Shown here piece after piece: positions 285 through 28,500 of a stretch of 64,000 nucleotides of DNA. The DNA is from Pelomyxa schiedti. Its lineage: Eukaryota > Protista > Evosea. The stretch lies in the NCBI GenBank assembly GCA_020536535.1, contig JAHLWZ010000187.1, positions 186,001-250,000 of the forward strand, given 5' to 3'. Numbering within the stretch: position 1 is the stretch's first letter; every line of letters starts with the position of its first letter. A program made the position numbers and the translations under genes. Below the pieces are notes generated by a model, which was not told the DNA's origin, made no database searches, and saw only the letters and a program-made list of their open reading frames with translations.

Positions 285-2146
285 ATGGCTTCCAGGGGCG
301 GTGGTAAGTTGGCAGTAATGCCCGGACAAAATGCCCAACACAATTTCGCTCTCCAAGGGTCCTAACTATCTTTTTTAGACTCAAAGAGCAGCCGTGAAGA
401 GCTGGATGTGGAAAATAGACAGTCTCGTGACATGCACCCATTTTTGAAGTTGATAATCCTTTCTGTATGTGTGCCTCTTTTCTCTATTTCGCTTCAGTTC
501 TGAATCCTGGGAATGTTGCTCATATAGGTTGGGTTTCTGACAGGTTTCTACGATTTTGTTGTGAGATTGTTCCTTATTTTGTTTGTTCTTTAGATGCGTA
601 TGAACTGTTTGTGATGGGTATCATCATTGTCATTCTTCATGAGGTCTACCATGGCTCACCGTGGGTCTATACCTAGACAATTTAATTAGTGTATCTTACC
701 CAATTTATCATACCCTCCAAAACAACGCAGAGGTCAGTCTTCATTTGTAGCCACATCTATACTTATGGGTGCTGCTGCTGGTCAATTGTTCTTTGGCACT
801 CTTGGTGATAAGGTGGGCCGCAAAGTCATGTTTGTGACCACCATGACGGTTATTGTGATATTCACCCTGTGTGCCGCTTGCAGTCCAACAACAAGCAATG
901 GACCTTACTTAGCCCTTTCAGTTTTCAATCTATGCTTGGGGTTTGGAATAGGAGGTATAGTTATGTCTATCTTGACGAACGCACGGTTCAGTAACTTTGC
1001 TTTGCCTTGCAGGGGAGTATCCTTTGTCAGCCACTCTAGCTTCAGAATCATCGCCTCCTGAAAAGAGAGGACGTAATATGTCTTTCGTATTTTCCATGCA
1101 GGGTGTTGGGAACTTACTTGCCCCAGTTATTGTATGAACACCCTCTTTTCAACAAAAATTGATTAGCTCAGGTGTCTCTCATCCTTCTTTTTCCTGTTGA
1201 TCTGGAATGGGTCTGGAGGATAGCTCTTGGGGTAGCGGCAATCCCTTGCGCTCTTTCAGCATATCACAGATTACGGCTCCAAGAATCATCACGTTACAAG
1301 AAAGCGCGCACTGACTCACTGTCATTAAGACAGACACTCCATTTACTGAACCAGTGTAAGCTCCATCTTCTTGGAACTGCCGGGACCTGGTTCTTGTTCG
1401 ATATAACATTTTACGGGAATGGACTATTCAAAGTTGGCATACTTACTCCTGATGTGCCTTCTAATGCCAAGCAGGAAACCGTGATTGAGCTACTGGGCTT
1501 ATCAGGCGGTGAAACTCCACACGACGTGGTGCAAAACACAGCATTGTCATCATTGGCGATCACTATAATTGCTTTACCTGGTTACTTTCTTGCAATACCC
1601 CTTACAGAAATTCTCGGGAGAAAAAAGATTCAGGTTCTCAATTCCTGTATGAGAGCAGTAACCTTATAGCGTAGTTAATAGGCTTTGCGATGGTGGCCAT
1701 ACTATTTGCCATTATGGCTGGTGCATACAATACCATCCTAGAATTACCTGCTTTATTTATAATCATTTATGGACTGACTTTCTTCTGGAGTAACCTTGGA
1801 CCCAATACAACTACGTTTGTTATCCCCGGAGAAGTATTTACCTCCGAAATAAGAGCCACCTGCCACGGCGTAAGTATCACTCCCACCCAACAGTCAGTAG
1901 TAAACAAGTAGTAACCCACGATAACTGTAGTTATCTGCTGCGGCAGGCAAAGTTGGAGCTATGCTAGGTACCATTGCCTTTGAACCAGTGTCTGAGGCCA
2001 CTAGTTACCGTGTCACCTTTGCAATATGCTCGGGCATTGCGATTTTGGGATTTTTGATGACCATAGCCTGTATACCAGAGACAATGGCCAAACGTGACGC
2101 CCAAGACGTATCTCCCCTTTTGAAGAAAGACAAAACGAAAGTGTAG
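285..2146 (+). CDS. MFS phosphate:H+ symporter (PHT1/Pho84 family), multi-exon
   Basis: Spliced motifs VGFLT-DAYELF, FFGTLGDKVGRK, GGEYPLSATLASE (PHT1 signature GGDYPLSATxxSE) and SNLGPNTTTFVIPGEVF..RATCHG. ATG at 285, stop at 2146. Confidence 0.9.
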
Positions 2147-2246: not shown

Positions 2247-4536
2247 TTAACAAATGAAGCAAGGCTTCTTCTTCCCCTTCTTCTTTTTCTTGGCATTCTG
2301 TGCTGCCCATAGGTCATCCCAATTTGGTTGCATCTTATGGGAGAAAGTAACCAGTACGAAGTGGATAAAAAGCCAAAGTGCCCCAATTCCAGCTGCAACT
2401 CCCCAATCAACTGCATCAATTGCCACGACTTTGTTTATAGCAATTCCAGATATGAGTGCACAGACTAATAACAGTCCTACAAGGTAGTACTTATCCATTA
2501 GGGTCAAATACTGGGTGCGGCACAAGGACATTTCAGCAGTAAATCTGAATGGCTTAGGGGTTTTACTGGTGAGGTACAACATACTTGGCAAAGACAACTG
2601 TACCAAGAACCATGAGTAATATACCTAAGCGGTTATCAAAGGAGCCAACAGGGTCTATCTCACAAAGGAACAGAAAACAAAGTCTGCAATTTCCGTTATT
2701 TTGGAAACTGGAGAGAAGGCTTACCCAACAATTCCAAAAAGAGGAAGCTTTTAGTGTGGGGAGAGCAAAGGGGAAGCGAGATTTAGCTAAATTCGATTAG
2801 AATAATTTTGGAAAGCTTACTGCTGCATTCATGCCATAATGCAAAAACCGCCTTTCAATAGCACCAGTAATAACAATCTTCTGAATATCTTTTTGACTCC
2901 CCTTATTTGTAACCATATCACTGCTTTGTTTGTCTTTGCCTTTTGCTTTTTCTACAACCTCCACCCAGGCTGCCATTGGCTTCCACTCTTCACTCAGTGA
3001 GAACAAGTAAAATAGTACGTTCTGGAGAGGGTTCTTCTCAGGCGCTTTAGGGACAACTCCCTTTGGGTTAGGTTTCTTAGCATTGTCTTGGTCTTGTTTC
3101 TTCTGCTCTTCCTCGGCTTTCTTAAGAGCATCTTGAAATCGCAGAATATATTGGCTGGTACTGATGGGTTCTAGAGGACGGGATTCCAACTCGCAACCAG
3201 GCAGAGTGAGAATGATATGAAGCAATTGGCGGTCTCGTGGAAAAGGTTCCAATTCACAGATCTTAAATTAAAATCTTAGCGGGCATACAAGGGAAATTCG
3301 AAATCACCTCACGGAATGTTCCAGCTATTTTTACATAATAATCCACTTTAGTCTGTTGTGTGCATAAAACAAAAGAGTAATACAATTGGTAGCACTCACT
3401 CTGCGAAATATTGGTCCTTTTACGGACTTCTGAGCTGCAGTAGTCTCACCACTGCTATGCCCAGTGGACTGAGGTGCAATAGCAAGTTCTTCGTTAGGAG
3501 CCAGGTTCCTGCATTGTATTGTGGGAAGGTACAGCGATGATGGCTCCACCGCTCCCTCTTTACTATGAGGCAGATCAGTGTGCCATGACAAACGTAATAG
3601 AACTTCAGCTCTGAACTTTGGAAACTGAGATGACAAAGTTGTTGTACAGGCACACCTGGTTTAAATCTTCCCATATTTTGACGAGGGTAACCTTGGCAGA
3701 TTCAATTTTTATATTAGATATGGCACTGCTAGGTGGCAGTGGTTGGTACGGGAGACCTTCCACCGCACACAGGAATTGATCTATCTCATGGGACTCAAGT
3801 CCCATATGCTTCAGATGGGCCCGCTCCAACCTTGGGAAAATGCCAATCGGTACCTATGAGTAAAAAGTCCATTAGCCAAGTACCTTGTGTTTGTTTTGTG
3901 TTTTTCGTTTTCCGTTGTTTTGAAGAACTCTGTATGTTTTTCTTTTCCAAAAGGGAACGGTGTCGCAATGAATTGAAACGCGAGGGGAACATAAAAAATA
4001 AAGAAAGAAAGTTCAAGCAAAGGTACCCTGTGCTCAGCGAATCTTGCAGCGCAAGACAGTCCGTTCCTGCGGACAAACTCCTCGGCCTGCCGTATGCCCA
4101 TCTCCTCCACGGCCTGCTCCTCCATCCGCTCCCTCCTCTTCTTCTCCTCTATCGACGCCATCACCGCCGCCTGGCCCCCCGTGATGCCCGCCGTCGCCGC
4201 CGCCAGCGACGCGTCCGCCCACGTCGCCGCGCTCGTCATCGTCGGCGTGGCGCACCCCGTCGCCGCCGCCCCCCCGCCGCCGCCGCCGCTGGTGGTCGTC
4301 GTCGTGGTCGTGGTGGTGGTGGTGGTTACGGTGTTCGCGGCCGTGGGGCCCGCCGCGGCGGAGGCGTGCCTGGTGCCGCCGTGCCGCATGGAGCCGGAGG
4401 AGGAGGTCGTGGGGGCGTGGCGGCCGGTGCCCGAGCTGGCCGAGGCCGGCGTGCCGCCCCTCGCCGCCGCCGCGGCCTGCCTCGTGGTCCCGGCCACCGT
4501 GGCCGCTCCCGCCGTCTGCGACATCCCCGATGACAT
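2247..4536 (-). CDS. Cys-less (Pro-loop) pentameric ligand-gated ion channel with N-terminal low-complexity region and SAM-like domain, and C-terminal polybasic-CaaX
   Basis: Manual splicing gives beta2 FRAEVLLRLSW, loop A LYLPTIQCRN, Pro-loop GTFREICELEPFPRDRQLLHIIL, pre-M1 IERR, M1 LPLFGIVGLCFLFL, M2 RLGILLMVLGTVVFAK, M2-M3 SLCRTQYLTLMDKY, M3, a short loop, M4, and the end KKKKKGKKKPCFIC*. Confidence 0.88.
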
Positions 4537-4806
4537 TCGTGGTACGAAGGAACTACACAAACAACGGTGGCCGCTTTCGTTATATTTTTAAGTTTTTGGT
4601 TTTCCTGAGAATCCCAGAATGCGAGTGTTAGTTCCATTCTCACTTTCACCCGCCACTTTGCACGCAAGGTATATGCGAAATTGCTGCACATCGTCGGTTG
4701 TTGTCTGTGACCTGTACTTGGACTCCAGAGTGTTCTCCAACTTGGGAGGAGGCCTGCCGATTTAGCGGTCACCGATCAGAAACAAAGTAAAAAACAAACG
4801 CAGGCG
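4537..4806. promoter_or_regulatory. Putative bidirectional promoter between the pLGIC and cullin genes
   Basis: 270 bp between divergent ATGs at 4536 (-) and 4807 (+); no specific element proven. Confidence 0.45.
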
Positions 4807-7800
4807 ATGGAGAGAGGGAAGAGCCCGGACGCGTGGGCGCGGCTGTGGGAGAACTTAGAACGCATTCTTATATATGCCGCCGAGGGCCTCACTCACAAAA
4901 TGTGGATGCGGTTGTACACGTGAGCACACACGCCTCCTTTTTTTTTTTCCCCCGTTGCAACAAGTTGTTAGAGATGCTTTTGATGCTTCTTCTGCTGGTC
5001 GTCCCAAGGAAATATTAGACGCCGCAGGTGAATTGATGAGAAGGAAGATACACGAGATTGTCGAGGTACTGCATCACGTCTGTTCTTGGTTCCAGAAATA
5101 ACCAATGACTGGGACATGTATAGAGCAATGCACATGAGCAGGGAACCATTGAAAATTCAGTCGATTTTTTGACCCTCTATGTTCAACACTTTCGCAAGTG
5201 GCATAGTGCCATAAAAATTGTGGAGCACATTTTAGCCTATCCGGTATGGCTAATGGCAATTATTTTCACTGTCTCACATTTTTAGCAACGAAGTTTAAAC
5301 CCCCCGCTATCAGTGACAGAGGTTAATTAATACACCCAGCTGACACTAATCAATATAAGGTGGGGGTGCAAGTCTGGAATAGCAGTCTACCACGAGAGAG
5401 TGTTGTGAAGGTGTTCAATATTATGATCCATATCATAATCAACGACTACTTAGCCCATATGCATGCTGAATTAATCCAACACTGCTTTTTGTCGTTTGGT
5501 TGTGTAAACCCCGCATTTATTTGTTACTTATTCCCACCAACAGACACCGAAACCTACACACTGTTTGAGGAATCCTTCCTTAAGGAAGTGGATCAGTACT
5601 ATCGATCGCTGTTTACCACCATTCTTCATGAAGAGCATTTCCCAACTTTCCTTGTAAAATGTTGTGAAATTCAATTGTGGTGCCCCAGTAATATAACTAG
5701 GTTTGTCAGTCATTGAGCAGGAAAAAGTGAAAGCTGACGTGTTCCCAAAAACCAAAGAAACTGGAAAAAAGGTATTATTTTCTTTATATGAAACATTATT
5801 GCTTACATTCATCAGTTTGTTGACTTTATTGACAACAGTGTAAAAGGTTACCAGGAGTACATTGAGGCTCATTTTGTGGAGGCACTAAGAACTAACTCTG
5901 AAGATGGTAAATCTTTTCTTTCAATCCTTTTTTTAAGGTTCTAAAGATTTACGACGGATGTTCCAGCTTCTGTCTCATACAGATGGCCTTGCCACAGTGA
6001 GTGCTCTTTTTGGGCGATATGCAAAAATGCATGCCATGTACTTCATTGAAGACAATCGAGATGCAGCCTCATCAGTATAACGCCTTCTTTTCTTCAACCT
6101 TCACCTTTTTCAGAGTCCGAAAGTGTTCATTGAACAAGTGCTAATCATATATAACCAATACAAGAGGCTCTTGTCATCAGTCTTTGAAGATAACACCCTT
6201 TTGTGGAAATCATTTCAAAATGTATACCTCCCTACCATTCCTTATCGTATGATTTCATTTACGATAGGCTTTTACCGACTTTATGAATAATAATGCCGTA
6301 ACCAAGCCGTCTCCAAACCAAGCTGTTGACAAGGCTCCTGAACTTATTGTTCAATATTTGTGTGATGTGGTCTTATTTCAGGTACATATGATATGCACTG
6401 TTTTAGTTAAGATTGTCTAGGGAAGAGATAATGTGCCAGAAGATATGGTGGAGAAAACTGTCATAGCAGTGGTGTGTATTTCACCACATTACGGCATTCG
6501 TTGAGTCTTGGTAGGTGCCTCTTTTCAAGACTACTCATGAGGAAACCCTTTTTTGGCTTCTTTCAAAGAAACTCTCTTCTTACTTGATGTTAGACAAACC
6601 TCGATTGCTTATAAATAACTTCCAGTATTTTGTGACACAACTAAAGGTTTCAACGGTGTTTATACTTTGCTGACTCCCTTTAATAACAGGAAATCAAATT
6701 TTCGTTTTGTGCTCAACTACAAAATATGATCTCTGATATTACGGTTTCTACATCCTTGAACGAAGAGTTTCTCCACCACACACCACTTCCATGTTTGCTG
6801 CTCGTATAGATCACTTTTTGAATTCTAAGAAATATTAGTTAAATGGAACCTCAATGTAGTACGCCATGGGTTATGGCATCTTTCGGTTCCAGGAACGACA
6901 GTGCAAGTTCCTGAGCAGGTTTTTATTCAAACACCCCTTTGTTAGTAATGTGTTGAAAGCTTCAAAGTGCCGTTGATCAATTTCAAACCTTCTATTCCAA
7001 CAAATTTACCGGTCGAAAGCTTCTGTTCCTCCTCAACTACTCTTCTGCTTTCACTATTATGAAAGGAGATCAAATTCTGAGGTTTTTCAATTCTTGTTGT
7101 GATCTACATGTAAAGAATGCACTAGGCTTAGTGCAACGGCGTACCAAACGATTATTCTACTACAACTTGAAAAAACGGAGCAAATGTCACTCAATGAGCT
7201 TATTACTAACACTTCTATCAGTATTGCTGAGCTCCAACATGACTTGCAGGTCTCGGACTTCCCTCCCTCTTTTTTTGGTCTTTGACCATGGAATGCTAAA
7301 TCAGCCACTGGTCAAGCTTCGAATCGTGCACTGTAAAACTCCCCAACCAGAATGGAATGAACAAACAGTCATAATGCTCTCTAACCAGAGAGTCCCGAAA
7401 TCATCAATTCAGTAAGAAGATTGCACATAATAAGAAGTACCAAGAATAAAATAGAGTGGGACACAGAGTGGACTGTAGGCAATTCTCGGATGCCAAGGCG
7501 GAAGCTTGCCCTGGCCGTCAAATGATGGATGACAGGAAGTTTCTTCTCAAGGTTTTTTACGTCTCTTATTTCCCCTTTCTTCTTACTCCTCTTTGCTTGC
7601 CGATTTCCCGTAGGCTACAATTGTACGGCTCATGAAAGCAAAGAAAAAATCTGGGCACGCCGAACTTATCCAGCAAACAATCGCCGAAGTTTCAAAGTTC
7701 CTTCTCGTTTTTTTTGTTTCCAACTCACTCAATCGACAAAAAACAAAAAAAAAAAAAGGATCTTCCAACCCAGTGAGGCAGCCATCAAACAAGCCATAGA

Positions 7801-7870
7801 ATCTCTCATTGAGCAGGAATACATTGCTCGATCCACAGACAAAACGTCCGAGTATGAATATGTATCTTAG
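4807..7870 (+). CDS. Cullin (CUL1-like), multi-exon
   Basis: N-terminus ..KMWMRLYT; C-terminal neddylation domain DDRKFLLK-ATIVRLMKAKK (acceptor Lys intact) and IKQAIESLIEQEYIAR..YEYVS*. Confidence 0.9.
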
Positions 7871-8096: not shown

Positions 8097-9954
8097 ATGG
8101 ACGACGTTAGACATCACCCAACAGATCCCATGACAAGTAGTTCCCCAACAACTACCACTTCGTTGTCATCGTCATCATCATCATGTGCAGCCCCACCGAC
8201 CACGACTACAACAACAACGGCTACTACGAGTACAAGTTCTAGTGCGCTGTCAGTTGGTGAGGCAGAGACTGCGATTGCGACTGCGACTGGGACTGGGTGT
8301 TCGTCGGCTGCAGTTGCTTCTGCACTTACGTCATCGGGGTCGGGGATTGGCGTCGTGGTGGTGCCCCACCTCGTTTCTAGCGTGAGAAAGTCTATGCCCG
8401 TGGAAATTAAAACTGCGTTACATGTGAGTGAACGCTTGAACAAAAAAACCAAAAAACAAATGGATGAATTTGAAAAAAAAAAAATGGGGTAAGCTTATGT
8501 TGACCACGGCAGACCACGTATGCTAATCCGTGGGATACTTGGACAGGGCTCATTGATAGGGAAAAGGTATCTCTCTTCTCAATTCTCTATCAAAACAAAC
8601 TCGTAGATTATGGGCTGGATGTTTAAACCTCCAGTGAAACCCACTGAAGCTCAATTAGATGCAGTTCTCCCAGTTAAACCAGTGACAGCTGCAGAACTCA
8701 CAGCTCACGACTTCACTGTAAACTTAACTTTCTTTTGTGCTTTTCTAAGGGCAAAAGGTTTGTTGGATTGGACACTCAACGGTATTCTTGCGCATATTTG
8801 GTGTAAATATATTGACTGACCCATGTAAATCGCTTTGTTACCTAGTCTTCTTAATGCACCGCCAGTATTTGCACAACGCCTTGGATTGGATATTATAGGA
8901 GAATACAAAATTGGTCGGAAGAGGGCACGCCAACCGCCAATAAGCCTCAACAATCTACCTAAAATCGACATTGTTTTGGTATGAAGTAGAAGCGATTGTT
9001 AAATCTAAAACGGAATAGATATCACACAACCACCAAGATCACCTGGATTCTGGAAATGTTAGTACCTTAGCTGGCCTGTTTAATCCACTCTTTTTAGTGC
9101 CTCGGGTACGTTGTGGATTCAAACTTCTTTTCTCAGTATACATCTAGGGATTGACTTCTTGGTTTATGTCACTCAGAATCACTAATGTTACTCTTTTACC
9201 CCAATGGCAAAATTGTGACAGTAGTAGGTCCTAGAATTCAACTGGTGGAATTCTTACTACCATTCTGGAACACCTTTGAAAATAACGTTTGTTCCTGCAC
9301 AGCATTGGTCAGGTCGTGCCCTGGTTGATTACAATCTGGCACTTTGGGGTGGATGGGTATAGTATAGGTTAAGGCAAACATTTGCTCAATTAGCCAACAG
9401 GTTTTGTCGTCCAATACACATCCCGCCAAGGTGTATTATGCAGGCGATACTGGCTACTGTCCGTGTGTACAGAAATTCTCTTGAAAGCTTCTGAATATAT
9501 ATAGAGTGTTCCCTGAAATAGCATCCTTGGGTCCATTTGATTTGTCCTTGATCCCTATTGGTCCAAATGAACCCAGAGTGTTATATATCCTTATTCTAAT
9601 TTAAGATTAACGTTTTCAACAGGAGTATGAAAACACAACACGTGGGTTTTGAAGATGCTATAAAAATTCACGAGGAGGTGAATTCTCGGCAATCCGTTGG
9701 TGTTCACTGGGGTGCGCTTGCCTCCCCCTAAAATAATTACCTAGTCAACTTACATACTAAAAACTTACCACCCACAAAAACCTTTCCCCAAATTCCACAC
9801 CCAAAGTTTTCTTAATTACAACATAGGAACGTGGAGCATGGGGGCAGATTCACTAACACAGGTCAAGGCACAATTCGCAGCCGAGTGTGGGAGAAAGGGT
9901 GTGACCAATTTCACCACACTGGACATAGGCCAAGTCTGGCACTTCTACACTTGA
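8097..9954 (+). CDS. NAPEPLD: N-acyl-phosphatidylethanolamine phospholipase D (metallo-beta-lactamase fold) with Ser/Thr-rich N-terminus
   Basis: YANPWDTW, LPKIDIVL-ISHNHQDHLD (HxHxDH), YYAGDTGY, GPFDLSLIPIG, VGVHWG; last exon ends ..GQVWHFYT* at 9954. Confidence 0.85.
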
Positions 9955-13617: not shown

Positions 13618-16600
13618 TTAGCTCGTCTGGGTGGGTTTCAATAGGGCCTGAGCAGCCAGACACCCCTCAGCAGCTGCCCGACGGTAAAAGGTGTTCGCTA
13701 CCCCAACATCCATCTTCACACCATTGCCGTATTTGTAACACGAACCAAGGTTGCACATTGCATCGGCACTTCCAGCATCAGCAGCCCTCCTGAAAAGTGA
13801 CACAGCCTCGTTCATGTCCTTCTCAACACCATTCCCATTGTGGTAACACCAACCAAGGTTGTTCATTGCTTTGGCACATCCAGCATCGGCAGCCTTCCTG
13901 AAAAGTGAAACAGCCTGGTTCATGTCCTTCTCAACACCATTGCCATTTTCGTAACACAAACCAAGGTTGTTCATTGCAAGGATATTTCCAGCATCAGCAG
14001 CCCTCCTGTAAAGTGACACAGCCTGGTTCATGTCCTTCTCAACACCATTGCCATTTTCGTAACACAAACCAAGGTTGTACATTGCAATGATATTTCCAGC
14101 ATCAGCAGCCTTCCTGTAAAGTGAAACAGCCTGGTTCATGTCCTTCTCAACACCATTGCCATTTTGGTAACACAAACCAAGGCTGTTCATTGCATTGGCA
14201 CTTCCAGCATCAGCAGCCTTCCTGAAAAGTGACACAGCCTCGTTCATGTCCTTGTCAACATCATTGCCATTTTTGTAACACAAACCAAGGTTGAACATTG
14301 CATCGGAATCTCCAGCATCAGCAGCCTTCCTGTAAAGTGACACAGCCTGGTTCATGTCCTTCTCAACACCATTGCCATTTTGGTAACACAAACCAAGGTT
14401 GTTCATTGCAGCGATACTTCTAGCATCGGCAGCCTTCCTGTAAAGTGACACAGCCTCGTTCATGTCCTTGTCAACACCATTGCCATTTTGGTAACACAAA
14501 CCAAGGTTTAACATTGCATCAGCACATCCAGCATCAACAGCCTTCCTGTAAAGTGACACAGCCTCGTCCAGGTCCTTCTCAACACCTTCACCATTTTCGT
14601 AACACACACCGAGGTTGTTCATTGAATCAGCAAATCCTGCATCAGCAGCCTTCCTGAAAAGTGACACAGCCTGGTTCATGTCCTTCTCAACACCATTGCC
14701 ATTGTAGTAACACAAACCAAGGTTGATCATTGCCTCGGCACATCCAGCATCAGCAGCCTTCCTGAAAAGTGACACAGCCTCGTTCATGTCCTTCTCAACA
14801 CCACTGCCATTTTTGTGACACCAACCAAGGCTGTTCATTGCAGAGGCATTGCCAGCATCGGAAGCCCTTCTGAAAAGTGATGCAGCTTTGCTGGTGTCCC
14901 TGTCCACAGCAGTTCCAGCAACAAAACATGCACCAACAAGTGACATTGTGGAAGCCCACCAGAGTGTGGTTGGTTCGTTGTGTGTCACACAACAGCCCAC
15001 GATCTGAGGGAGACCACATGATGTTGTCTTCTCCAAACAACAGCAGGCTGTCCACAAAGCAACAAAATATTGGCATGCCCCCTGTCTGCCCCACCCCTTT
15101 GCAGGGGGATCACCAAAATCACTCATGGCGGATACCAAGGCAATGAGTTCATCCCACTCTTGTGCAACACTCATCACCGTTTCCTCGGCTTTCTTCTCTT
15201 CGTGAACTTGTTGTGTTTGTGGCATCAGGGGTGGTGGTGTCACCAGCACACTGTTGGCAGCCAACAGCAGCACCCTTCGGCAATAGTCTCTCATTTCCGG
15301 AATGGAACTGGAGATCGCACGCGAAAATGCGGATGACAAGTTTGGGGGAATGAGTTGGTGCAACGCAACGTGATCATCTGCGAAAAAACGGAGGCCATAA
15401 AGAAACAGAAGGCCAGGAAGGTAACACAGCTCTTCCTGAACCTGAACCTGAATCCGTGATGCTGATGTTCCTTTTTTTTTTTTTTGGAATGGCATAGAGT
15501 TTGCATTTAGTGAGTGTGGAATTCATCCCCCCCCATTTGAAACAACACGCACTGTTGTTTGTGCGGCAACTCTCAAATTGTTTGAAAGCATCTGAGACAA
15601 GGTGGATGGCCGCCTCAATGTTGACTTGCTCAAACTCAAAAAGTGCCTCAAGCATAATCTTGCTTCTGGGAAATTCAAGTTGCTCATCTTTTTTTTTTAT
15701 GTTTGTATGTCTGCAGGATAATATTTAATTAAAATAACTTGATTTGAGGATACGGAGTTCATCTGGGGGGGTGGGGGGGGTGGGGGGTGGAATTGGTATT
15801 GCATACATGTGCAGATGGTGAGATGGTCACTCCACATTCGTTTGCAGCAGTCTTTTTCTGAACACGACTCGATGATGTTCCTCAAAAAATTGGATGCTGG
15901 AAATGATAGATCAGAAGATGATGGTGCCGATCGTTCTGGCCTTGTTGTTGTTGTCGTCACCTCCACAGAGGTGGTGGTGGTGGTGACCTTTCCTTGAATC
16001 AACCCCACACAGTCCTTGATTGCGTTGCTGTTGCTGCTGTCGTTGTCGTCGCCGTCAACACAGCCGATGTTGCAGATGTGCCTCATCCTGAGTGCAGTTA
16101 AAACCAATTCAGGGAGAGTTGTTCTGTGGCTCTGGTTGATGGCTCTCTCGAATTCTAAATCTGTGTGTGTGAACGAAGCCTTCCCTGAGACTGCTGCTCG
16201 TATTCCCTTTCTCGCCACACCACTTCCATGAACTGCAGATGCAGATGCACCAGAAGAAAGTAAATAATGAAGAATCAACAACGCTGGTGAGAACAACGGC
16301 TCAACATCGAGAGCTCTGTGGAGAGTGTCACAACAGTCCTTTGTCGAGTGGCCATGCAGAATCTGGCAAAGAGCCTTTGCCGTTAGTCTCCCTTTTTTTT
16401 TTTTGTTTTAAATTGGCATGACACACGCACACACATCAATTTTAACATCACAAAAGCTCGGAAACGCAACCTGGATCATCATTGTCTCTGTTTGCCATTG
16501 GTTCCAAGAGAGTGTAAAACGAGAGCTGTTCCTGAGGACTCGGATCGGGAACCACAGTTTCCAACAGTTTGGATGCATCCAAAAGGGGAATCCTTTTTGC

Positions 16601-25550: not shown

Positions 25551-28500
25551 CTAGTCCTCCTCCCTCTTGCTGCTTGTGGACTCATGGTGCCGGTGTTTGT
25601 GGCTCGAGGAGTGTTTGGTTTCTTTGCTTTTTGTGTGTGAGTGAGAGTGGTTGTCCGGATCTTCTTCCAGAACTTCTTTGTTGTCTGTGGTGATGCCCAC
25701 TGAAGGATTTTCAGGAGGCGGCTCCTCTAGAAGTTCTTCAGGCGGTTCGATTTTGGGGGTTTGTGCTTGCTGCAGTGGTGATGTTCTGTTCGAGCGGCGT
25801 TTCGGGTGGTGCGTGTGGTGCTGCTTTTGGCCGCGGGACAGAGTAAGATTCATTTCGGAAACTGACTTCCTCAACTGTGCTGGTACAATGACTTCGGACC
25901 GTGAGTGGTGGTGATGCTTCTTGTGGTGGTGTGGCTGCTTGAGGGTGCCTGAATCATCGCGGTTGCTGTCGTTCTCGGTGCTCAATGGTTGGTCGTCCTT
26001 GCTATTTTCTGCTTGGTCATCTTTGATACTTTCTGCTTGGTCGTCTGGTACTCCCATCTCTTTTTCGATTATGCTGAAGTTACTCTTTGGTCTTTCTTCT
26101 TGAGCCCGGGGTAAGGGCTCTTCTTTCTCGTCATGTGGGAGAGGAGAGTCTCTACTTAAGTCATTACTGTGGGTTTCCACCAATAAATCGCCTCCAGGGT
26201 GATTGTCATCAAATGGGGGAGGCCCTATATAATCGTCTGGGGGAGGCCCAATGAAATCTGAAGGCGGGCCAATTGAATCCAATTCGTCAATGGCACTAGG
26301 GTTCCTTAAATTGACAAAGGAATGAAAGCGATAATGGGATTCGAGTTCAGAGACGAAGGGAGAACCAGTGGACGATCTGTATTCCCCCACATCGCTCAAA
26401 TTTCCGGGAGTTTGACGGTGTACATCCTGTGGCGTATCATCAGAAGAACTGTCATAGTCGTCATCGGAATTAATCTCATGTGCAGGAACATTGTGTCGGA
26501 TTGGAAGCTTGTCACTTGTGGTGCTGGAGAGATCAAGAGTAAGTGGGCCTGAGGTATTAAGCGTTGAACTTCGTATAACTGTGGGAGCAAAATAAACCGT
26601 GGCTGGGGTAAACTCCACTGGATTGGGGGATTTAATATCTTGAGGTAGTGATGCGGTTGGTGTGGTTGTGCCTGTAGCTGTGGCTGTGGTAGTTGGAGGA
26701 TGAAAGCGATTGGTTGGACGGGTATGCCTGTATATTGGAAAAGAATGCAGAATCGTTTGCTTTGTGGGAAGTGCAGATGCTGTTGGGGGTGGTACACTTC
26801 CGAGCGTTGGTGAAGTTGCTTCAACTTCAGGGAGTGATGTTGGGGGAGGGATTGGTGCCGTAACCGATTTGGATACGGCGGAAAGGATTTCTGCTATTGG
26901 AGGTGCTGCAACAAGGGCGGAGCTGTGTGACGAAGGAGATGAGGATGGAGATGGGTGTTTATTCACCATGGAGTAGTATTTTTGTTCCAGTCCAACTATG
27001 GAGGAATGCTCGGGCTCTCTTTTAGGCAATACATGGCTTAACATGCGCTTCCGTAATAAACGAATGGCTTCTACGCGTACGTTACATGTGCACATAAGGA
27101 ATGCAGCCATACCACAAAAACACTCCGTTGTATTGACATTACTTTTGGCAGAGCATTCAAGATACTGAGCATGATGAGAACGGGAAATATTGAGCCCTTG
27201 AATACTTTGCTTGTGGGGCATATCAATCTTATTACAAACAATCAAAACTAGTATAATATTAGATTACACTGGAAACCCAGATTACATACTTGGCACACCA
27301 TCAGTGCGCATGATTCTTATAGTTTTTACAATTTGTGGTACAGTATCAAATGAAGAAGCATTATCAACTGCATAAACTACAATTACAACATGTGCAGAAG
27401 CGAGTCGCTCAGCTGCTACAGCATCAAACTAAGTAAGATTTTTTAGGGGGGGAAAAAAAAAGGTACTATGAAGACCTTATCAAACTCGTTTATAACGAGG
27501 GAGCATTCAATTCCATCAACGTTCAATTTCCTCTGGGAAACGTAAAAAAATTGAAACTGTGTTGTATGATAACCTTCAATGGGAAAAAGAACCCGTCATC
27601 CAATTGGAATGCCTATAGAAGGGAATAATGTAATTGAGACAATCTGTTAGAGTTACCTTCTGAATGAGATATGTCTTTCCAGAGGACATAACTCCACAAA
27701 CTACAATGTTTGCAACTACAAGTGTTGGAGATTGCATAAAACTCCTAGATATACCTCGAATAGAAGAGTATCTCCCTAAAGCTGGTGCTCTTGGCATATC
27801 TACATCAGTTCCACAGTCAACAACATGTTGGGGAAGTGATGGCGCTTCAAAAGGAGCCCACTGCCCAGTAGGAAGTGCCATCCACCTTGGAGTACCATGG
27901 TCATGTATTTTAGGGGACCACCAATCCTTTGTTAGAAAGAGTTGAATTGTCTCAGGCCTGTAATGTATAAGAATGATATAGAGTGAAAAGTTGAGAGGGA
28001 TTACATTAATAAATTCAATTTTCCTTCAGACACAAATTCAATCCTTGCTGGATATGCAAAGTTCTTTTTTAAATCGTTTGGCACGAATTTCGCCTCACTG
28101 GATTCAGATAATTTACTCTTCACTAGGGAAGGATGCGAGTCAATTACAGCATTGATAGGCATTATTTACATGGATGTAATACGGAACTGGATAATACAGG
28201 AGGATTGGGTGCTGATATAGTCAGAGGATTTATGTGTGGCTTTGGTTTCTCCACAAAAGACTTCATGGAGAAGATTTTCAATTCAGGTAAAGAGTCCTGT
28301 TTTTTTGGTCTGCCAAATGGATTTGCCTCTACAGGGTATTTCTTCCCTTTTCTTTGGAATTCTCTGTAGGAGACTTTACAAACACGTCAGCCAAAAGGTG
28401 TCAAAGAAAAAAACGTACCTGATAAAAGAAGGTCAGCCATTTGAGAGGGTGCATACAGTGGTACAAACCATGAGTGAGTCCTGCAGGAAGTTATCAAATG

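Follow-up and report, generated by a model that had tools for sequence, protein, structure and literature searches.

A divergent pentameric ligand-gated ion channel gene of Pelomyxa schiedti with a predicted cytosolic ligand-binding domain

Results

The gene and its transcripts

We analysed a stretch of 64,000 nucleotides (nt) from the protist Pelomyxa schiedti (GenBank assembly GCA_020536535.1, contig JAHLWZ010000187.1, positions 186,001 to 250,000), which we refer to as the window and in which positions are numbered from the first letter. On its minus strand, at 2247–4536, lies a gene of eight exons that encodes a protein of 609 amino acids (aa). From its sequence this protein is a very divergent ion channel of the pentameric ligand-gated family (pLGIC), and we refer to it as the channel protein. 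It carries a low-complexity N-terminus, a segment resembling a SAM domain, a ligand-binding domain (LBD), four transmembrane (TM) helices (M1–M4) and a tail with a lysine run and a CaaX box (Table 1). Signals in this sequence suggest that the LBD probably faces the cytosol.

Table 1. Features of the channel gene and its protein, with their positions in the window
Feature	Position	Strand	Evidence
Exon E1	4536 (ATG)–4027	minus	3' joint from RNA; ATG from open frame
Exon E2	3853–3656	minus	RNA joints
Exon E3	3615–3400	minus	RNA joints
Exon E3b, 45 nt, encodes TKVDYYVKIAGTFRE	3352–3308	minus	joints 3261>3308 and 3352>3400 in X1, X2 and X3
Exon E4	3261–2821	minus	RNA joints
Microexon E5, 23 nt, inside M1	2747–2725	minus	joints in X1 and X2
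Exon E6	2683–2585	minus	RNA joints; donor 2585 from RNA
Exon E7, stop TAA at 2249–2247	2544–2247	minus	RNA
Low-complexity N-terminus, aa 1–125	4162–4536	minus	GC-rich; coding and start inferred from open frame
SAM-like segment, aa 143–205, split by intron 1	3749–4110	minus	hydrophobic-pattern resemblance only
LBD homologue (beta-sandwich), aa 216–461	2848–3718	minus	hmmsearch and hhalign
Pro-loop F330-P331-R332-D333	3232–3243	minus	aligned to profile FPFD
Lys-rich insertion, aa 365–400	3031–3138	minus	sequence
Lys-rich insertion, aa 426–450	2881–2955	minus	sequence
Pre-M1 Arg, R460	2851–2853	minus	aligned to profile pre-M1 Arg
M1, aa 462–485, including Pro472, encoded by three exons	2662–2847	minus	hydropathy peak 2.28
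M2, aa 495–511, then M2-M3 linker	2544–2634	minus	gap-free profile alignment
M3, aa 527–548	2433–2498	minus	hydropathy peak 2.37; aligned to profile M3
M4, aa 557–578, after a loop of about 8 residues	2343–2408	minus	hydropathy peak 2.17; hhalign to profile M4
Polybasic run KKKKKGKKK, aa 596–604	2265–2291	minus	DNA and RNA contigs X1, X2 and X3
CaaX box C606-F-I-C609, stop directly after	2250–2261	minus	DNA and RNA contigs

The splice evidence comes from RNA contigs of three public single-cell transcriptome runs (X1, X2 and X3), which are labelled 'protist metagenome'. In a fourth public run the whole stretch is present as one near-identical DNA piece, and the assembly may derive from this run. 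Splice joints in X1–X3 fix the eight exons, the joint between exons 1 and 2 being seen in contig X1 record 3, and the gene is transcribed and spliced. All seven introns begin with GT[AG] and end with AG; six of them measure 40–73 nt and intron 1 (4026–3854) measures 173 nt. The spliced frame is open from the ATG at 4536 through the final TAA, and the DNA has an in-frame TAA at 4590–4588, 54 nt 5' of this ATG. The RNA contigs are unspliced across 2544–2210, so the C-terminal end ...KKKKKGKKKPCFIC, followed by the stop, is present in the mRNA and the CFIC ending is kept after splicing.

An earlier account of this locus, made from the DNA letters without database searches (the sequence-only reading), had placed a spliced minus-strand gene at 2247–4536. 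The gene stood, but its exon model needed three corrections from the RNA joints. A motif-guided splice model was dropped in favour of the RNA-based one: it contained a 22-nt intron and lacked E3b. Its acceptor for E3 lay 9 nt too early and was corrected by the RNA joint, and its donor for E6 lay 18 nt too late. Those 18 nt, which would add YVVPHQ with the only M2-M3 Pro, are intronic in X1, X2 and X3.

Two further observations concern the transcripts. Run X3 retains the 73-nt intron at 2748–2820, and the product would end, after MNAA, with VSFPKLF and a stop. At window position 2377 one contig from X1 (depth 2.8) has T in place of A on the plus strand. Codon 567, in M4, thereby becomes CAT instead of CTT and encodes His instead of Leu; this may reflect an allele, an error or editing.

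Homology to pentameric ligand-gated ion channels

As a reference set we used the 119 bacterial and archaeal loci (L001–L119) that matched a degenerate DNA pattern for D-F-R-x-[FY]-P-F-D-x-Q; an earlier GLIC-specific DNA pattern had matched no loci. In the proteins encoded by nearly all 119 loci, the motif is followed by three or four hydrophobic segments. The reference loci belong to Neur_chan_LBD and Neur_chan_memb (Pfam PF02931 and PF02932), and several of them (L022, L052 and L087) gave no Pfam match at E 0.001. A profile hidden Markov model (HMM) was then built from 58 non-identical bacterial pLGIC cores.

Against the spliced protein, the profile HMM scored 30–32 bits over aa 305–551 (E 1.3e-11, one-sequence search). 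None of 6000 shuffled sequences reached this score, the best global shuffle (n=3000) giving 6.5 bits and the best local 15-residue shuffle (n=3000) giving 19.4 bits. Global hhalign against the bacterial profile gave a collinear alignment from beta1 to M4 (aa 206–594) with a probability of 92% and an E value of 8.6e-8, at an identity to the profile consensus of only 15%. Exon E3b supplies the strand preceding the Pro-loop and aligns to the profile columns just ahead of it. With the RNA-supported donor of E6, the region from M2 position 0' to the start of M3 (R496 to D528) aligns to the profile without gaps, which internally checks the splice site as well as the homology.

Many of the residues typical of the superfamily are found at the expected places. 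The superfamily motif at the tip of the beta6–beta7 loop is [F/Y]-P-x-D, with the Pro 100% and the Asp 93% conserved (Jaiteh, Taly and Henin, 2016; PMC4795631, Table 1), and the channel protein has FPRD. Cys is absent from both canonical Cys-loop positions, which makes 'Cys-less' the correct term. The buried aromatic residue of beta9 is Trp in 71% of the superfamily (PMC4795631), and W416 aligns to the conserved Trp of the profile. The pre-M1 Arg is 94% and the M1 Pro 77% conserved (PMC4795631); the spacing of R460 and P472 is 12 residues and equals that of R192 and P204 in GLIC. In M2 of the superfamily, position 0' is basic in 79% and position 9' is Leu or Phe in 88%, and a Pro in the M2-M3 linker is 88% conserved (PMC4795631). 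The channel protein keeps the basic 0' residue (R496) and has D494 at -2', G505 at 9', F509 at 13', F512 at 16' and a Glu at 19'. M3 begins with YLTLMD(KY), in which the Tyr and the Asp of the M3 start are kept and align to the profile. The two Lys-rich insertions that the sequence-only reading had noted in the LBD are both present (Table 1); one lies between beta8 and beta9 and the other in the beta9–beta10 hairpin, at the normal sites of loops F and C.

The profile score, the collinear hhalign alignment, FPRD, R460, M1–M4 and YLTLMDKY bear out the complete Cys-less scaffold claimed in the sequence-only reading. These comparisons indicate that the protein is a real, very divergent pLGIC. On the same basis the residues that couple the LBD to the transmembrane domain (TMD), namely FPxD, the pre-M1 Arg and the M1 Pro, are kept, and the interface is intact.

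Searches with single exons gave a different picture from those with the spliced protein. Pfam found no Neur_chan or SAM match in single exons, phmmer with exon 4 as the query had 0 matches among 1.84 billion representative proteins, and a tblastn search of plasmids with this exon found nothing. Metagenome contigs searched with exons 4 and 7 yielded pattern matches, among which no relative was confirmed. In the ESM Atlas, the look-alikes found for exons 4 and 7 had scores of 0.61–0.73 and were uninformative. In PDB sequence searches with exons 2, 3, 4 and 7 the matches to SLU7, TALE repeats and OTOP2 were rejected as chance matches only. Two mixed MAFFT alignments of bacterial pLGICs with exon pieces from the window (A1 and A2) were also rejected; they misplaced the pieces, and a search with A1 returned only bacterial pLGICs. 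A six-frame profile scan of the 64-kb window found no second pLGIC gene. Pfam or BLAST searches that go exon by exon do not see divergent, intron-rich genes of this type.

Topology signals in the channel protein

Hydropathy analysis found exactly four hydrophobic segments, M1–M4. Within aa 1–460 the maxima are 1.29 (KD19) and 1.15 (KD15), and the first 60 aa peak at 0.57 (KD12). As a comparison, 46 of 59 bacterial reference open reading frames (ORFs) have a hydrophobic stretch of at least 2.0 upstream of the Pro-loop. In the model that starts at the ATG at 4536 nothing hydrophobic precedes M1, in line with the signal-peptide-free protein of the sequence-only reading; a fifth TM helix or a signal anchor was looked for in aa 1–460 by hydropathy and none was found. 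Starting instead at Met126, Met137 or Met146 would likewise create no leader.

The distribution of charge also differs from that in bacterial pLGICs. We counted Lys plus Arg (K+R) in loops defined by the profile and subtracted the sum for the M2-M3 linker and the post-M4 tail from the sum for the M1-M2 and M3-M4 loops. In the 58 bacterial references the M1-M2 and M3-M4 loops contain 5–10 K+R and the M2-M3 linker plus tail 0–3, a difference of +3 to +9. Another 120 bacterial pLGICs give values of +4 to +10. In the channel protein the two sums are 2 and 10. By this positive-inside count the bias is inverted, -8 versus +3 to +10 across 178 bacterial pLGICs. The spliced protein retains the acidic M1-M2 loop (EIDPVGSFDNR) and the acidic M3-M4 loop (NKVVAIDAVD) seen earlier in the DNA, and the flanks of M1 are net positive before and net negative after the helix. 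The LBD was said to lack N-x-S/T sequons, and in fact none occurs in the whole 609-aa protein. As far as prediction goes, these signals do not agree with the canonical topology, which has a signal peptide and both the LBD and the C-terminus outside.

M4 is followed by a tail of 31 aa, at the end of which stand eight Lys in nine residues, a Pro, C-F-I-C and the stop. CFIC fits the definition of a CaaX box as Cys-a-a-X with an aliphatic a2 (PMC11152559), a2 being Ile608. This KRAS4B-like end, already recognised in the sequence-only reading, was recovered from the DNA and from the RNA contigs, and no CaaX-like end was found among 120 bacterial pLGIC matches. A Cys at X favours farnesyltransferase, and the CaaX prenyltransferases are cytosolic.

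The N-terminal region

Residues 1–125 consist to 81% of A/T/G/S/P and include 5 Arg, 3 His and one acidic residue. The first acidic residue is aa 108, so that aa 1–107 hold no Asp or Glu, and the tract contains homopolymer runs T12 and G6. An Ala/Thr/Gly-rich N-terminus had been described from the DNA as about 170 aa long; the low-complexity tract is present but covers aa 1–125. For the SAM-like segment that follows, neither of the two halves gave a Pfam SAM match at E up to 10 or a PDB match, the domain being split by an intron.

Similar sequence occurs elsewhere in the window. An ORF at 8097–8492 on the plus strand opens with a Thr/Ser/Ala homopolymer-rich tract that resembles the N-terminus of the channel protein. 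GC-rich islands lie at 30–31, 33–35, 54–55 and 56–58 kb, with a GC content of 0.52–0.62 versus about 0.43 elsewhere in the window, and several of them overlap long ORFs without a Pfam match. It seems to be a habit of this genome to extend coding sequences with GC-rich low-complexity tracts.

The upstream region and neighbouring genes

A multi-exon cullin gene spans 4807–7870 on the plus strand, and its C-terminal exon matches Cullin_Nedd8 at 1e-8. It is transcribed divergently from the channel gene, with 270 base pairs (bp) between the two start codons, which leaves little room for a hidden signal-peptide exon. We looked for such an exon on the minus strand at 4063–6000 and found none that was usable. 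The only ATG ORF in this interval with a signal-peptide-like hydrophobic run, at 4865–4779 (MRSKFSHSRAHASGLFPLSIACVCFLLCF, then a stop), is antisense in the cullin gene's first coding exon and offers only GTT donors, versus GT[AG] in the seven verified introns. We judge this ORF to be a chance occurrence, though it is the one place for a hidden leader exon, and from the sequence such an exon is unlikely.

On the other side, an MFS-type transporter gene with a weak Sugar_tr match (1172–2146, plus strand) converges on the channel gene, the two stops being about 100 nt apart. Further into the window, an intron-free ORF of 625 aa at 13621–15495 (minus strand) is made up of 11 Sel1 repeats (Pfam E 2e-127), and this stands out because the other genes examined in the window are split by tiny introns. 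In an ORF of 564 aa at 25554–27245 (minus strand) the start matches, weakly (E 4e-4), a Ras-family domain's C-terminal third.

Discussion

The pLGICs are textbook receptors for extracellular transmitters. The sequence of the channel protein points to another arrangement, and we consider it on balance probable that its topology is inverted and that its LBD faces the cytosol. One would not expect translocation of an N-terminal domain of 460 residues that lacks a signal peptide. M1 would insert with its N-terminus in the cytosol, because there is no leader or anchor, because the flank before M1 is the more basic one, and because 10 of the 12 K+R of loops and tail lie in segments that are canonically 'outer'. 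The N-terminal part of about 460 aa, with its disordered region, SAM-like module and beta-sandwich LBD, would then stay in the cytosol, and the short acidic M1-M2 and M3-M4 loops would face the outside or a lumen. After M4 the tail would be back in the cytosol, where farnesyltransferase could modify Cys606. The argument also runs in the other direction: with four TM helices, a cytosolic C-terminus would make the N-terminal domain cytosolic too. The cytosolic LBD proposed in the sequence-only reading thus agrees with all signals at the level of the sequence, but the topology itself is something that we infer.

Several points weigh against this reading. To our knowledge, every characterised pLGIC has an extracellular or periplasmic LBD, and we know of few prenylated polytopic membrane proteins. 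The RNA contigs end at about 4062 in exon 1; the stretch 4063–4536 is uncovered and the ATG rests on the open frame, which is weak coding evidence in a GC-rich stretch that is open in several other frames. The start codon and the absence of a further 5' exon are thus putative. In the CaaX box a1 is Phe, which is not aliphatic; a1 is the more tolerant position. Gly505 replaces the 9' Leu and Cys519 stands in the column of the M2-M3 Pro, and the loss of these two residues makes channel function uncertain. The searches described above found no relative from another organism that would show whether the features are conserved. The Arg-bearing, acid-free first part of the protein is also of a composition typical of presequences, a point to which we return below.

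One alternative is that the protein is a pLGIC of canonical topology, in which an unseen 5' exon or start would supply a leader, the SAM-like segment and LBD would be outside or lumenal, and the tail would lie outside and never be prenylated. Such a protein would share the orientation common to all known pLGICs. RNA coverage stopping at 4062, the several open frames of exon 1 and the single signal-peptide-like ORF at 4865–4779 (minus strand) would allow for it, and the SAM domain of STIM1 is lumenal. However, the only candidate leader is antisense in a cullin exon, ends in a stop and has GTT donors only, and just 270 bp separate the channel and cullin start codons. The protein would also have a K+R bias of -8 where the 178 references have +3 to +10, nine Lys together with a CaaX box would serve no purpose on the outside, and the protein has no sequon anywhere. 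We therefore regard canonical topology as unlikely.

Two other explanations concern what the protein does and where it resides. It may derive from a pLGIC and no longer be ligand-gated, acting for example as a membrane scaffold or a constitutive leak, possibly still with inverted topology. The change of the M2-M3 Pro (88% conserved) to Cys and of the 9' Leu to Gly would fit this, as would the long Lys-rich insertions at the usual sites of loops F and C, the identity of 15% to the profile consensus and the lack of relatives in the databases searched. We think it quite unlikely, since the coupling residues (FPxD, pre-M1 Arg, M1 Pro, 0' Arg and the Tyr and Asp at the start of M3) are all at exact spacing, and the gene is transcribed and spliced with its frame intact across eight exons, including a 23-nt microexon. 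An organellar channel seems very improbable. In that case the Ala/Thr/Ser/Arg-rich, acid-free sequence of about 107 aa would be a mitochondrial or other transit sequence, to which the absence of Asp and Glu from aa 1–107 and the 5 Arg and 3 His in aa 1–125 would be suited, and the CaaX-like end would be fortuitous. A length of 107–125 aa, however, far exceeds that of usual presequences, and runs such as T12 and G6 are typical of expanded low-complexity coding sequence. The neighbouring gene at 8097 (plus strand) starts with a similar tract, which again looks like a genome habit, and a polybasic run directly before a C-terminal CaaX box is very unlikely to arise by chance.

If the topology is inverted, the protein would probably work as a pentameric channel whose gating depends on a ligand or condition inside the cell, acting on the cytosolic side. 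The Lys run would hold the tail on the acidic inner leaflet, adjoining the interface of LBD and TMD, and the SAM-like module may cluster or scaffold channels. By analogy with E222 and E243 in GLIC, the channel may be cation-selective, from the Asp at -2' and the Glu at 19'. A fuller version of this idea is tentative, and we put it forward as possible rather than probable: in these flipped channels the cytosolic LBD would sense a metabolite, an ion or a second messenger, the farnesylated polybasic tail would pin the gating interface, and the SAM-like module would cluster the channels.

Full-text searches of the literature found no paper linking pLGICs with SAM domains, with CaaX boxes or prenylation, with amoebae or with inverted topology. 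The family is known; its predicted orientation here and the combination with a SAM-like segment and a lipid anchor appear to be new. If the prediction is true, the Cys-loop/Pro-loop superfamily would have here its first branch gated by intracellular ligands. An inverted member occurring in nature would show that the pLGIC fold can enter the membrane in both orientations. It would start the hunt for cytosolic agonists that act on a pLGIC domain and, with a lipidated tail at the coupling interface, would provide a natural test of the effects of M4, tail and lipid on gating. It would also bear on what pLGICs do in unicellular organisms, described as an open question in the 2016 survey (PMC4795631).

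Comparison with known systems

The closest comparison is with the prokaryote-type Cys-less pLGICs such as GLIC and ELIC. The channel protein has in common with them a beta-sandwich followed by four TM helices, an FPxD motif without flanking Cys, a spacing of 12 from the Arg to the M1 Pro, a basic 0' residue, a very short M3-M4 loop and collinearity from beta1 to M4. It differs in having no signal peptide, a cytosolic-type N-terminal extension of about 215 aa and a K+R bias of the opposite sign (-8 versus +3 to +10). Its polybasic-CaaX tail is 31 aa long, whereas the references have 0–16 aa after M4. It also has Cys for the M2-M3 Pro, Gly for the 9' Leu and Lys-rich insertions in the LBD.

With the Cys-less Pro-loop receptors of protists (PMC4795631) the protein shares a eukaryotic, unicellular source, the absence of the Cys pair and the core residues of the superfamily. 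The 2016 survey lists such receptors from stramenopiles, chlorophytes, opisthokonts and alveolates, and makes no mention of Amoebozoa, SAM fusions, loss of the signal peptide or CaaX tails (PMC4795631).

Bacterial pLGICs of the DeCLIC type (DeCLIC is described in PMC9897478) resemble the channel protein in having an additional domain N-terminal to the LBD. Most of our reference loci (for example L007:1224-3116, L011:370-2631 and L066:3516-6110) likewise encode 300–640 extra residues N-terminal to the channel core, and in many the addition amounts to 300–500 residues. In the bacterial proteins the added domains lie in the periplasm and come after a signal peptide or anchor, whereas the extension of the channel protein is low-complexity plus SAM-like and has no hydrophobic leader.

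The tail compares best with the membrane anchor of K-Ras4B. Both have a Lys run directly before a C-terminal Cys-a-a-X with an aliphatic a2. Unlike K-Ras4B, which is a soluble GTPase, the channel protein is a polytopic membrane protein; its a1 is Phe and its X is Cys, and its prenylation is predicted. The proposed mode of action would have functional analogues, and functional ones only, in the IP3 and ryanodine receptors and in the CNG and HCN channels. Their folds and families are unrelated to the channel protein, but in them, as would be the case here, a cytosolic LBD controls a transmembrane pore.

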